Part shown: piece by piece, positions 58,709-64,000 of the stretch
How the letters are laid out: each line of letters starts with the position of its first letter
How positions within the stretch are numbered: position 1 is the stretch's first letter
Origin: Oikopleura dioica
Taxonomy: Eukaryota > Animalia > Chordata
Direction of reading: 5' to 3'
Assembly (NCBI GenBank): GCA_907165135.1
Contig: OU015569.1
Coordinates: 2,232,001-2,296,000, forward strand
DNA length: 64,000 bases
Notes under the pieces: generated by a model
The model's database searches: none
What the model saw: the letters and a program-made list of their open reading frames with translations, nothing else
Told to the model about the DNA's origin: nothing
Made by a program: the position numbers and the translations under genes

Positions 58709-61700
58709 ATGTCGGCAACGAAGTCGGAACTGGAATCTCCGGGGGGAAATCGAAAGCTTCGCCCAGAGATCCAGAGATACGTTCCAGGAAAAACGAAGAT
58801 CTCGAAACAAGAGCAAAACCAAAACGACGAAAATTCGCAAAAGCGCCTTTTAGGAAAGTTAAAAAACCCAACAAAATCGCTGACAAAAGCAAAAGTTCGA
58901 GAGTGTATTAAATCACATGACCAGAGTTGACCGGGCTTCTAACTAAAGAACAGAGCTTATAAATCAGAAGCAAAAGTTTCGAAATGAAAAACTGTCGCAG
59001 CAGAACAACGGCGAGAGAGCGAGAAGCCGAAAGAATTCGGAAAACGTTCCTGCCAAGAACGCGAATTCCGTAGCCACAAACAGCCACGCAAAAGCCATGG
59101 CCGAAACAAACAATAATGAGCAGCAGAAAAGCATCGAGCGCAAAGAACCCAATCCGAAGAAGCCAAATCAGAACAAACGCAAAAATACGAAGAAAAAAGG
59201 TAAACGCCCGACATTTCTTGCTCCCTCAAAGCCTTATCAATTAACTCTCAATAATCGCTGTTGTCTTCAGACAGTCGTCCCCAAAACACTCAACAGCAGG
59301 ACAACTCAGACGCTCGTTCGGACATCTCGCGCGCTTCGACCAACATTTCCTCCCGCGGAGGCCGGAACAACCAAAATCGACAGAATCAAAAGTCGTCAAA
59401 GTTTCAAGAATTCCGAAAAATATCCAAGCAAAGAGAGGAAATCCAAGCCAAGGTCTCGGATTTGGTGTGACCCGCTGTGCGCAAAAATGAGTCCCCTGAA
59501 ATGGCGCACAAAATGATGTGCGCAGCATTCGCGGATCACAGAAAAGGCTGTGATTCAGTCTAGCACACCGCCAAATTTGCTGTGGCCGATCACAGCTCTC
59601 AATCACAGAATTCGTGTGATCCAAAAATTAGGGATGGGAATTCAGGCTTTCATAACGAGGGATTGTTGAATCATCTCAAAGGTCGAAGCCGCGTTATCGG
59701 AAATTCTTATCATCCGGCCATGGGATGAATAGTTTTAACAGGTTTCAAATAAGTCGGACATAAATTGGTGGAGCGATTTTGAAAGTGTTAGAGTCGAGAT
59801 ATTTCGACTCTCTCTTTTGCACCATGTTGGGGAGGGTCTGATGTGTGTTAAATAAGATTTTGGTGTTATTTGAATATGTGGAGGTGGAGTAATGAAGTCA
59901 CAAAGTTGATTGTGCCCTTCTATAACGCATTTTCATGACGTCATAACTCCACCACCAGAAATGTTATTGACACCAATTCTTCTTAAAATATGTAAACTTA
60001 TATCCGGCTACAGTCTGCAAGTTACAGATCGTAATTATCTTAGCCCAATCAAAAGTTACAGACATCGTATGTCCGACTAATTTGAAGCCTGTTTTTCCTA
60101 ATGAAATTCAGTGATAAATTCATGGGTCGGGCGAAAGGAATTCTGGATCACAAAAAAATTTGTGATCCAAATAAGACTGAATTTCAATTCTGTGATCGAG
60201 CCTCGATCACAGTTCTTCTGTGATCGAATAAACCTGCGCACATCTTATTGTGCGCCTTTTCAGGAGACATGTTTTCGTGCACAGCGGATCACACCAAATC
60301 CGAGACCTTGATCCAAGCTAGAGAGGAGCGCCCGCGAGACGATCGAGGATCCTACTCCCGCGGTGGTCCCCCAAGAGGAGGATCTCATCAACCAGATCGA
60401 GAAGTCCGTATTCAGCAAGAAACGAGAGAAGCAAGAGCTAAAAATGACAATCCTCCACGAAATAACAGAAACCGACACGAACCGACTAACCGACGAGACA
60501 CAGACACCAGAACAAAATCTGAAACGTCGAGGGGTTCAAATAAAGAGAGCAATATAAGAAATCGCCAAGAAAACAACAGATCCAATAATCAAAAACAACA
60601 GAAGCCACGAGGCAAAGCAGAGGATAGAAGAAAAGTCGAAAAAGAAAAGACACCTCCTCCTGCTGAGCGAAAAGAAGCTTCACCGGAAATCAAGTCGCCA
60701 GAAAAGGCACTTGTGTCTACTCCACAGAAAACGGCCGATTGGGGTGATCTCATGAACGAGGAAGACGAAGGGTTTAGCTTCGAACCACCAGGCGTTTCCA
60801 GGCGCGATTCGTGGGCCACTCTTGAAAATTCTAGCAGCAGGGACGCTGATACGGCTCCAAGACCATCAGGAAGCGCCAGACAACGGCCACAGAAAATCAA
60901 AGAGGAAGATGACTCTTCATCATCGAAACGCGCAAACGGCATTTCAGTGATAAGAATAAATCCGTCGCAAATGTCCCGCGTGCGCAAAGAATCGGAAAAA
61001 TACAACGCTTCAGGTTCGATCTTTCACTATTTCACAACATGCCCTATCAAATAATAATTAGACTCTGATGGGTACTCCACGACCGGGAATCCGGGAAGCG
61101 TTTATGGCAATCGTGCAAGGAAAAGGATCGATCGATTTAGTGCCGCTCTTGTAACTAACAGTGGCATCGACAAAAAAAAACTTACTTAAACGAGAAACAT
61201 AGTAAACGAAAATAGATTAGCATGTCTTTTTAGTATCGAGAAAGTTATCCTTCCCAAAGAGCTCCGCCAAATGGTGCCCGAATGGTCAAAAGTCGACCGC
61301 GAGGTGGTGGCCGCGGCGGTTACGATCCGGATTACGACCGTAACATCAACAGATACAGGGGTCGAAACGACGACAACTTCCGAGATCAGGACCGTGTCGT
61401 CGAAATGGTCAACAACGATACTCGCAGACGCAGTAAGATCACTTTTTTTGGTTTCTTTTTTCATCGGTATTTAGCAAAAGAAAGCGACATGAAGTACAAC
61501 CTCGAAAACGCAATTTGTAATTTCAAGCAAGCATATGAGAGCGCTCGTTTCTTAAAAACCTCAATTCCAGAAAAGAAACGCGCACTCGATATCTTCACAC
61601 AACTTGTCACATTCCATCCCGTTTTTACTTTTTCGGAAAAAGTTTTTGATCTGGTAAGGTCGTTTGCAAATTCGCGATTTGTCATTTTTTAGGTCTGGAA

Positions 61701-64000
61701 GGGAATTTTTTACCGGGAAGTAGAGATCTTTCGAAAAAAACTCGAAAACAGCAACGATCAGGAGGAAACATCGAGGACTACTGCTGATTTCGTCGAATGT
61801 CTTCTGATGGGCGTGGACTTCTACGACGATCTCGTCCGCAGCTGCGAGGAAAAATTCCAATTCAGCGTCAAGTACCACGAAAATCACGGAATCAAAGTCG
61901 CTCGGGCAAAGCAAGTGAAAGTGTGTCTATATTTGTGCCAACAGTTCTTCATCCACATGGGCGACCTAAGTCGATACATCGAACAGCTCGATAGAAGCGG
62001 TAAGCCGACTATATCTTGAGATAAAACTGCACGTTGACGCATTGAGAAAAAAATATATATTTCGAACTTTATCTGTGAAAATGAAAGAAATCGATTTAAA
62101 AAAGCAGAAATCGCGAACTCCTTTAATTGATGCAAGAGTAACCAGCAGAGAAAGAGGACAAAAAAGTGGCTGTGAAAAAAAGAGGTTGACTCATATTTTA
62201 AGCCCTTCCGCGTCTGTCACGCAAGATGCCAAATTCGCGTGAGTTCTACACGACGGCCAAAAACCTGGATCCTAGGCATGCGAAGCCCCATTACCAGCTC
62301 GGCGTCCTTTCCACCGAGCAGCAGAGACATTTTGAAGCGATCATTCATTACATTCGCGCCGCTTCTGTTGATAAGGGAGGTGGCAGTGGCACTGCAATGA
62401 GCCTCAATAAAGGTACTAAACTTTGTCGTTCTCAAATCGTTAGCATAAAAAATAGAGTTCGAAATGGCTCGCCGCGAAGCAGTGTCTTTCCTCGCCCGAA
62501 AGGAGCACCAAAAAGAACTAGCAAAAACACTGGACAATCGAGAAATCTGGTTCATAAAGAGAAAACTGCCGAATATGTCGAAAGAGCAGCTGAATAAGCG
62601 TTTTAAATTGACGTTTCTCGCAGCTCTTGGTCGAATATTCACTGGGATCGACGTCGCTATGGTCAAAGACTTTCTGGAACAAGCGTACAGTGATTTGGAC
62701 TCGCTCATTTCAATGACAAAGAATGGCGAAAGGCCATACATCCCCGCCGGTTTCCTCGTTGAATTGTCGATCGCCGCTGTCTTCGGAATTCAGCAAAGTA
62801 TCGAAAGGAAGCAAAACGAGAAGGACGCGTTGATGATGTTCTTCGGTCTCTTGGCGCTGCTCTGTAGAAGACTCAAAAACAAACTCAAGAGCTTGATGAA
62901 GACATGTCCGGACGGGGACATTTACATCATCGGGGACGGAATGTGTCGACTACTCGCTTTTGACGAGATTCAAAATCGTACGACCCATGTCTACCCGAAT
63001 CCGGGAAGAACGATCAACGAGATAAAACAGCGAGTTGAGCAGCTATCAATAACTACTGGTAAGAAAATGCACGATTTATATATGCCTGCCTCAAGCGTCC
63101 CTCCCAGTCCCACATGGTCTAGGGGTTAGGATTTCGGATTTTCACTCCGACGGCCCGGGTTCGATTCCCGGTGTGGGAGGACTTTTTCGTTTTTGATTTC
63201 TTACTGTTATTCAGGTCCTACTGTACCCATCTGCATCTTGCACGTCGGTAGCGAGGATTCATCGACTGCTCATCAGACAAAACCGGTTGAAGAGATCGTC
63301 ACGAACTTCCGCGAACTCGTTTCCGTCGTTAAGGTTCGTCAGAGGAAATGATTCAATAAAATTCAATAACTAAATTTACTTTCAAATAGTCGACCTTTCC
63401 AAACGCTGCGATTTACTTTTCTGAGATTTTCCCTCGCTGGGATCAGGACAGTTCCAGATCAGAAAAGCTCAATAATGAGATGTACAGAATTGCGCCAGAG
63501 CTAGGCATCAAATTCCTTCGAAACAAAGAAAATTTCAACAGGAAGGAATTATTCGTATTCAAGTATGGCTATCTTCAGATCTCAATTTTTTTTTGCTTTG
63601 AATTAGGGAGAAAGAACTGACGGTCTTGAGCGACAAGGGCAAGAAGCTATTTAGTTCGGAGCTCACCAAGGTAGACAAGAAGCGTTTCGATAGTACACTA
63701 AGGAATGAATTCTAGTGCATCGAAAAAGAGCTGTCAAGCCACAACGATTTCGGCCGAGCGCTTGAGAACGATCAAGTGAGCGCACTTCTGCCAGCAATGC
63801 GCATTCTCACCGAGTACTTGGCCACTCATCACCAACAGTAATGATTGAAGCAGTGATAGACAGTTACGGAGTTTTTAGCTCAATGTTCGCCAGCCAGAGG
63901 ATCCAAAATCTGGAAAGTGTAGGCAGCTGTGGAGCGATTTTCTCCGAGCTAGCGAATTTGATCTGCCACAAGGAACTCCCTGTTCACGTTTCTTCCACGA
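58709..64000 (+). CDS. SMG6: SMG6/EST1A-like NMD factor (EJC-binding motif, disordered region, 14-3-3-like/EST1 domain); PIN domain expected beyond the window
   Basis: KLRPEIQRYVPGK resembles the EJC-binding motif. VWKGIFYREVEIFR, GVDFYDDL, HMGDLSRYIEQ, SREFYTTAKNLDPRHAKPHYQLGVL, EAIIHYIRA, LLPAMRILTEY parallel SMG6 (LWKNAFYQVIEKFR, GSDFFDSL, QGDIARYREQ, ARSWYLKAQHIAPKNGRPYNQLALL, DAVYYYMRS, LLPSVKVWSDW). Confidence 0.85.
59449..60310. mobile_element. 862-bp MITE (CAAGG termini, hAT-like) inserted in SMG6 coding sequence
   Basis: caaggtctcggatttggtgtga... / ...tcacaccaaatccgagaccttg with ~170-bp imperfect arms. Exact TSD atccaagc (59441-59448, 60311-60318). Confidence 0.92.
62911..63730 (+). 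other. SGNH/GDSL-fold pseudo-hydrolase (OSK-like) domain encoded within SMG6 exons
   Basis: Spliced translation DIYIIGDGMCRLL...YPNPGRTINEIKQRVEQL...ICILHVGSED...KPVEEIVTNFRELVSVVKSTFPNAAIYFSEIFPR...EKLNNEM...IKFL...VLSDKGKKLFSSELTK shows SGNH blocks I, II, III and V with the catalytic residues replaced. Confidence 0.75.
63108..63179 (+). tRNA. tRNA-Glu (anticodon TTC), intronic
   Basis: TCCCACA/TGTGGGA acceptor stem, TCGGA-TT TTC AC-TCCGA anticodon arm, CCGGG-TTCGATT-CCCGG T arm. TTTTT Pol III terminator at 63183-63187. Confidence 0.97.

Follow-up and report, generated by a model that had tools for sequence, protein, structure and literature searches.

A probable LINE ORF1-derived SGNH pseudoenzyme domain within an SMG6-like gene of Oikopleura dioica

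The DNA analyzed in this study, referred to below as the window, is a stretch of 64,000 nucleotides (nt) from contig OU015569.1 of the Oikopleura dioica assembly GCA_907165135.1 (positions 2,232,001 to 2,296,000 of the forward strand). Toward its end, the + strand of the window carries an SMG6-like gene, and the helical region of the predicted protein runs without a break into a domain of the SGNH type. We consider it probable that this is an SMG6-type endonuclease gene of nonsense-mediated mRNA decay (NMD) with an SGNH insert derived from ORF1, the first open reading frame (ORF), of a long interspersed nuclear element (LINE), and that the insert was captured intact and is now a pseudoenzyme that serves as a binding or scaffold module. 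The insert comprises ~185 residues and is encoded by five exons, from position 62893 to approximately position 63745 of the window. To our knowledge, few components of NMD are as well conserved as SMG6, and we know of no accessory enzyme-fold domain within it. Our literature search found no paper that combines SMG6 and SGNH, and the literature it returned on Oikopleura and SMG6 does not concern an SGNH insert.

The placement of the insert within the SMG6-like gene is most directly seen in a single ORF (62464-63129, +), in which EST1-like helical sequence leads straight into SGNH block I with no stop codon or splice site between the two. In our gene model, the first part of this exon, exon A (62456..62892), encodes a helical part of the EST1_DNA_bind region (Pfam PF10373, with a profile match to the structure 4UM2), the final helix of which immediately precedes the insert. 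Exon A then continues in the same ORF (62893..63058) through SGNH blocks I and II, with GDG in block I and the block II Gly kept (E = 7e-4 against the family profile described below). Exon 2 (63215..63333) encodes SGNH block III, read as GSED, and the helix that follows it (family profile positions 109-138). The middle of the domain, with the strand and helix after block III, lies in exon 3 (63390..63562; family profile positions 140-187), for which a homologous stretch is present in the contigs L010 and L003. Exon 4 (63607..63670) would hold the block V equivalent, given its collinearity and an hhalign local match that is not significant alone. The end of the SGNH domain takes up approximately the first 10 codons of exon 5 (63716..63837), and the remainder of that exon encodes strongly conserved non-SGNH sequence. 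Introns 1 to 4, which separate these exons (63059..63214, 156 nt; 63334..63389, 56 nt; 63563..63606, 44 nt; and 63671..63715, 45 nt), all have GT..AG ends, each contains an in-frame stop if left unspliced, and the codons that they split restore the frame. A fifth GT..AG intron (63838..63878, 41 nt), located after the point at which a preliminary description of this locus had ended the feature, is followed by exon 6 (63879..64000), which is cut by the end of the window. The peptides quoted in that description are all present on the + strand in the places it gave, and its reading that the same exon runs into block I was correct, although it had skipped seven residues between LMKT and IIGDG.

The splicing of these exons is documented by natural contigs. 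When metagenome contigs were scanned for matches to exon A, two were obtained, L011 and L012, both of which share 93% amino acid identity with the window. The alignment of L012 with the window has gaps at exactly the four introns 1 to 4, including the 156-nt intron 1. L011 is a genomic contig of the L012 lineage (1 mismatch in ~275 nt) and retains intron 1; the two sequences part precisely at the donor of exon A, from which L011 continues with GT. Given that L012 is without introns 1 to 4 while the genomic L011 keeps intron 1, we take L012 to be a spliced copy of the gene, derived either from a transcript or, with lower probability, from a retrocopy. In addition, the ORF of the relative P0004 is uninterrupted across the exon A/exon 2 junction, and that of L010 is uninterrupted across the exon 2/exon 3 junction. 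At the position of intron 5, L012 contains a diverged 49-nt stretch (22/41 identity) whose length difference from the window is not a multiple of 3, and the frame is preserved only if this stretch is spliced out. Because of this retained stretch and a frameshift, the L012 ORFs (2-622, 346-753, and 761-1612) were analyzed separately, and their frames were never combined. The frame of the window is the conserved one, and the distant relative L010 reads the same stretch in a single ORF. The earlier proposal of continuous in-frame splicing is thus borne out by the GT..AG ends, the restored frame, the lack of introns 1 to 4 in L012, and the presence of intron 1 in L011. The last part of L012 (1613-2717), which extends for ~1.1 kb after the stop of the ORF encoding the PIN domain, has no ORF of more than 98 amino acids and could represent an extended 3' region, downstream sequence left unspliced, or a join made during assembly.

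The identity of the host gene was established from the domains on both sides of the insert. Upstream, the segment at 61693-62016 matched the 14-3-3-like EST1 domain of Pfam (PF10374) with an E value of 3.2e-10, above the cut-off, and we place the corresponding exon at 61693..61999 (+). A 39-nt GT..AG intron (61654-61692), read from the sequence, precedes it. The following exon (62203..62412, +), for which the upstream acceptor is only probable, contains the start of the TPR-like EST1_DNA_bind region, with a PF10373 match at 62226-62411 (E = 6.2e-9). It is joined to exon A by the removal of a 43-nt GT..AG intron (62413..62455), and the same junction peptide is found in the ORFs of P0011 and L002. 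Exon A extends the EST1_DNA_bind match, which covers profile positions 80-196 of 282. When the helical profile preceding the insert was searched against the PDB, the sole match was human SMG6/EST1A (4UM2; E = 4.6e-4). Downstream, the ORF that continues from exon 6 in L012 ends in a PIN_4 domain (Pfam, E = 1.1e-10) whose best PDB matches were the PIN domain of human SMG6 (2DOK/2HWW; E = 2e-8). Of the three Asp motifs of this domain, the first and last acidic ones, DTN and TDD, are visibly aligned with human SMG6. The PIN domain itself lies beyond the window end (64000) and outside the window sequence, so the preliminary description of an SMG6 with a PIN domain agrees with the sister contig, but no PIN domain is located inside the window. 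Because EST1 and EST1_DNA_bind are encoded in the window, the helical profile matches 4UM2, and L012 carries an SMG6-type PIN domain, we conclude from these sequence comparisons that the gene is an SMG6-like NMD endonuclease gene, as proposed earlier, assuming that the window continues like its 93% identical sister L012.

Homology of the insert to SGNH proteins was supported by several profile and structure searches. In a PDB sequence search, the first ORF of L012 matched the esterase domain of the zebrafish LINE ORF1 protein (ORF1p) ZfL2-1 (4C1B) over 128 residues (E = 3.7e-4), and with a profile built from the window exons and their relatives (A1), the match to 4C1B, the only significant one in the PDB, reached an E value of 8.4e-6. 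We also built a local hidden Markov model (HMM) from 113 LINE-type esterases, which serves as the family profile throughout. The contiguous L012 ORF1 matched this HMM with an E value of 1.6e-10, and hhalign related it to the esterase family with a probability of 94% (E = 1.1e-7). The same profile was also run against every one of the 3216 stop-to-stop segments found in six frames in the window and in three loci. The top three window segments were exons A, 2, and 3, and these fell collinearly on profile positions 42-99, 109-138, and 140-187 (E = 7e-4, 0.57, and 2.8, respectively). An AlphaFold2 model of the relative P0004, covering the N-terminal half-domain only, showed the terminal SMG6 helix followed by a beta-alpha-beta-alpha-beta-alpha arrangement, with a predicted local distance difference test score (pLDDT) of ~80-89 over the core, and the top Foldseek matches of this model were 4C1B and a GDSL protein. 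Single window exons gave no SGNH match in Pfam, because they are too short, and Lipase_GDSL_2 was reached neither by them nor by P0004 or L012. A homologous-protein search with exon 3 returned no candidate, a metagenome scan (JGI) with alignment A2 found no relative, and a search of database representatives with exon A yielded just 11 fragmentary ORFs. None of these was a full-length model of the protein, so the spliced product had no counterpart among database proteins. Taken on the significant matches, the insert is a true SGNH homologue whose nearest solved relative is the ZfL2-1 esterase, in agreement with the preliminary description as far as the SGNH assignment is concerned.

The nearest proteins outside SMG6 belong to a large family annotated as Lipase_GDSL_2 and encoded on eukaryote-sized contigs. 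One close relative, P0015, lies ~150 nt upstream of an ORF with Exo_endo_phos and RVT_1 domains, which corresponds to a LINE ORF1-ORF2 layout. A retrotransposon is therefore the best-supported origin of the insert as judged from sequence, given that, among solved structures, a LINE ORF1p esterase is the closest and that P0015 directly precedes an endonuclease/reverse transcriptase (RT) ORF; the possibility of such an origin had been raised at the outset. Many of the LINE-type esterase proteins (P0017-P0042) carry a precomputed Pfam G-patch annotation (PF01585) beside or instead of Lipase_GDSL_2. The gene table of contigs L013-L015 shows the P0015 LINE as three near-identical copies among Bro-N, Endonuclease_7, and rve/Chromo genes, and these contigs may represent a repeat-rich or virus-derived region of a eukaryote.

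The catalytic residues of the insert differ between lineages. In the ZfL2-1 esterase, the triad consists of S143, D279, and H282, and the oxyanion residues are G165 and N195 (PMC3905857). The canonical SGNH mechanism requires the nucleophile Ser, the oxyanion Asn, and the His (PMC3905857; PMC10792757). At the block I nucleophile, the window has Gly (GDG), as do the close lineages L007, L011, and L012, whereas the distant lineages P0004/L001, P0006/L002-6, and P0013/L010 have GDS. The oxyanion Gly of block II is kept in the window and in the close and distant lineages, and the Gly of the block II P-G motif aligns with the invariant Gly of the family. At the block III oxyanion Asn, the window has Glu (GSED) and L012 reads GNED, whereas GTND is found in P0004/L001, L002/L003, L010, and P0012/L008-9. 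The exon 4 match of hhalign, which is not significant alone, lands just after the invariant G-L-H of the family, and by collinearity we infer that the position of the catalytic His is occupied by Val in the window and by Ile in L012. MAFFT set the short exon 4 row under block I, and this placement was disregarded; no contig of a GDS-type relative extends as far as block V. The loss of the nucleophile Ser and of the oxyanion Asn, as claimed in the preliminary description, can thus be read directly in the window as GDG and GSED, while the block V His is probably also lost, as indicated by collinearity. That description had not foreseen that four distant lineages retain whichever of GDS and GTND their contigs cover, which suggests that these motifs were still intact when the domain was acquired and that their loss came afterward.

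The junction at which the SMG6 helix passes into block I is shared by at least seven marine lineages, namely, that of the window, two close ones, and four more distant ones. For the pooled SGNH pieces of the window and L012, the proportion of nonsynonymous differences (pN) was 0.124 and that of synonymous differences (pS) was 0.77, the latter being saturated. By comparison, pN was 0.012 in the helical end of exon A and 0.032 in exon 5, where pS was 0.66. The SGNH copy in the window has no stops and no frameshifts, and all of its splice sites are intact. The insert is less constrained than the SMG6 core, yet it is clearly under purifying selection, dead copy though it appears to be, given that its pN is far below its pS.

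We propose that the SMG6 of an ancestor of these animals, presumably appendicularians, acquired the esterase domain of a LINE ORF1p while the catalytic motifs of that domain were still intact. The tiny GT..AG introns of the window and the marine metagenome origin of its relatives are consistent with an appendicularian. Within the clade of the window, the domain would then have become a pseudoenzyme lacking the Ser nucleophile, the oxyanion Asn, and probably also the His. It would have been retained as a noncatalytic binding or scaffolding module between the 14-3-3-like domain, which binds phospho-UPF1, and the PIN nuclease, and such a module would most likely affect the site or partner of SMG6 recruitment rather than the chemistry of cleavage. 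Several points weigh against this interpretation. L012 is not a clean mRNA, since a single base shifts the frame once within its SGNH-coding stretch and its fifth intron is retained; incomplete processing of a transcript, misassembly, or retrocopying could each have produced it. Both the PIN domain and the full-length continuity come from this sister lineage and not from the DNA of the window. The Foldseek matches were not significant (best E = 0.02), and the model used was that of a half domain from the relative P0004. Block V, the C-terminal quarter of the domain, gave nothing significant against the PDB or the family profile when searched alone, and the state of the His and Asp had to be deduced from its position because no search detects this block by itself. 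Finally, the net charge of the insert, approximately -2 over 182 residues by pooled residue counts, contrasts with the +6 to +9 of LINE esterases.

We considered whether the SGNH exons could lie outside SMG6 altogether, as the remnant of a LINE ORF1 or as a nested gene in an SMG6 intron. This would fit the finding that their closest relatives are LINE ORF1p esterases and that single window exons give no Pfam match, but block I and the SMG6 helix share one ORF, with neither a stop nor a splice site separating them, both in the window and in six further lineages. In L012, the SGNH exons are also joined to the SMG6 exons that lie downstream, a PIN domain rather than an endonuclease/RT ORF follows in that contig, and pN/pS is low, all of which make such an arrangement extremely unlikely. 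A nested LINE remnant was rejected on the basis of the shared ORF and L012. If the insert does belong to the gene, it might have persisted as neutral ballast after the loss of catalysis in the clade of the window. The changes at three key catalytic positions, together with a pN that in the SGNH pieces is ~10 times that of the adjoining helical part, are what a decaying relic would show. However, pN is still far below pS, the window copy is free of stops and frameshifts with every splice site intact, and GDG is common to three lineages with saturated synonymous sites, so we regard neutral decay as very unlikely. The purifying selection on the domain and the retention of the block II Gly and of the overall scaffold could instead reflect an enzyme that still works in the lineage of the window through noncanonical residues. 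This is very improbable indeed with the nucleophile changed from Ser to Gly, the oxyanion residue changed from Asn to Glu, and a His position that appears to be Val.

The remaining alternatives concern what a captured domain without catalysis might do. The preliminary description had called the domain OSK-like, which would make it an RNA-binding module as in Oskar and tie SMG6 to germ granules. OSK is described as an inactive, RNA-binding SGNH domain, the loss of catalytic residues is common to OSK and the insert, and OSK (PF17182) is the only Pfam match of the L012 ORF1 (E = 0.047). That match reached 13.4 bits, far under the cut-off of 27, and Pfam gave no OSK match with the window exons or P0004. 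No OSK structure was matched in the PDB sequence or fold searches, the insert is not positively charged overall, and oligo(A) RNA was not bound by the ZfL2-1 esterase, which is its nearest relative (PMC3905857). Membership in OSK was rejected because the match is below the Pfam gathering score; the label survives as an analogy, and a germ granule role of this kind is distinctly unlikely in our estimation. The ZfL2-1 esterase did bind acidic phospholipids (PMC3905857), and by analogy, its homology to the insert might mean that the module has kept this activity and brings SMG6 to membranes. We think this unlikely, given that the net positive charge of the LINE esterases has been lost (-2 versus +6 to +9) and that pocket residues are changed in the insert. 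Overall, its near-neutral charge would not favor the binding of bulk RNA or of acidic lipids. ZfL2-1-type esterases crystallize as domain-swapped dimers of two half-domains (PMC3905857), and for this reason, a captured ORF1p domain could conceivably form a pair with the ORF1p of a LINE. This would deliver the PIN nuclease to the RNA of the element and amount to a genome defense of the gag-decoy type within NMD. The loss of catalysis in the clade of the window is compatible with such pairing, which we nevertheless hold to be quite improbable. We therefore return to a noncatalytic binding or scaffold module derived from a LINE ORF1p esterase as the interpretation we prefer.

Several other features of the locus were recorded. 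Intron 1 is ~3 times longer than its neighbors because a tRNA-Glu (TTC) gene sits inside it in the sense orientation (63108..63179, +; ARAGORN; Rfam RF00005, 61.6 bits), followed by a T-run. No tRNA was found in the available parts of the corresponding introns of L007 and L011. The positions of introns vary by lineage. The 39-nt intron of the window at 61654-61692 is absent from L011, whose ORF is uninterrupted across this point; L007/P0001 has an extra intron within exon A; L003 has an intron just after block I; and L010 has one exactly at the junction of the SMG6 helix and the SGNH domain as well as a long intron between blocks II and III. The ORFs upstream of the EST1 exons are low in complexity and basic and have no Pfam match. 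This 5' region also contains an inverted repeat (59449-59543/60216-60310) with 95-nt arms that are 83% complementary and 672 nt apart, which may be a small transposon or its ends, and for which an Rfam search gave no match.

In summary, our analysis provides a checked gene model whose splice sites are backed by a natural spliced contig, and it points to an apparently clear-cut example of domestication, in which a core nuclease of RNA surveillance has taken in a domain of a retrotransposon protein. The passage from intact catalytic motifs to a pseudoenzyme still under selection appears to be visible among the lineages, which form a natural series in which the role of SGNH pseudoenzymes can be studied alongside the OSK domain of Oskar. 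It also opens the question of whether NMD factors have been retooled in the fast-evolving, compact genomes of tunicates. Compared with canonical SMG6/EST1A, the window gene has the same EST1 and EST1_DNA_bind domains, and its sister lineage has the C-terminal PIN domain, but the window gene also bears the ~185-residue SGNH domain after position 196 of 282 in the EST1_DNA_bind profile, where canonical SMG6 may, as the preliminary description supposed, have just a short loop. The ORF1p esterase of CR1/L2-type LINEs, represented by ZfL2-1 (4C1B), is the best PDB sequence match and top fold match of the insert and its relatives, and in both, blocks I, II, and III and the strand after them succeed one another in the same order and with the same spacing. 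In contrast to that esterase, the insert is embedded in a cellular SMG6 gene and split by spliceosomal introns, is flanked by SMG6 sequence in the window and L012 with no ORF2 after it, is about neutral rather than basic, and in the window carries Gly for Ser, Glu for Asn, and probably Val for His. Oskar likewise places a catalytically depleted SGNH-like domain in a protein of posttranscriptional RNA control, but the insert has no accompanying LOTUS domain, is not basic, and groups with LINE esterases, whereas a bacterial origin has been proposed for OSK (PMC7250577). Other inactive SGNH proteins, such as the insect PAF-AH homologues named in PMC3905857, show in the same way that the SGNH scaffold can outlive its hydrolytic residues; by their description, these are stand-alone proteins, whereas the domain found here is inserted in another enzyme.

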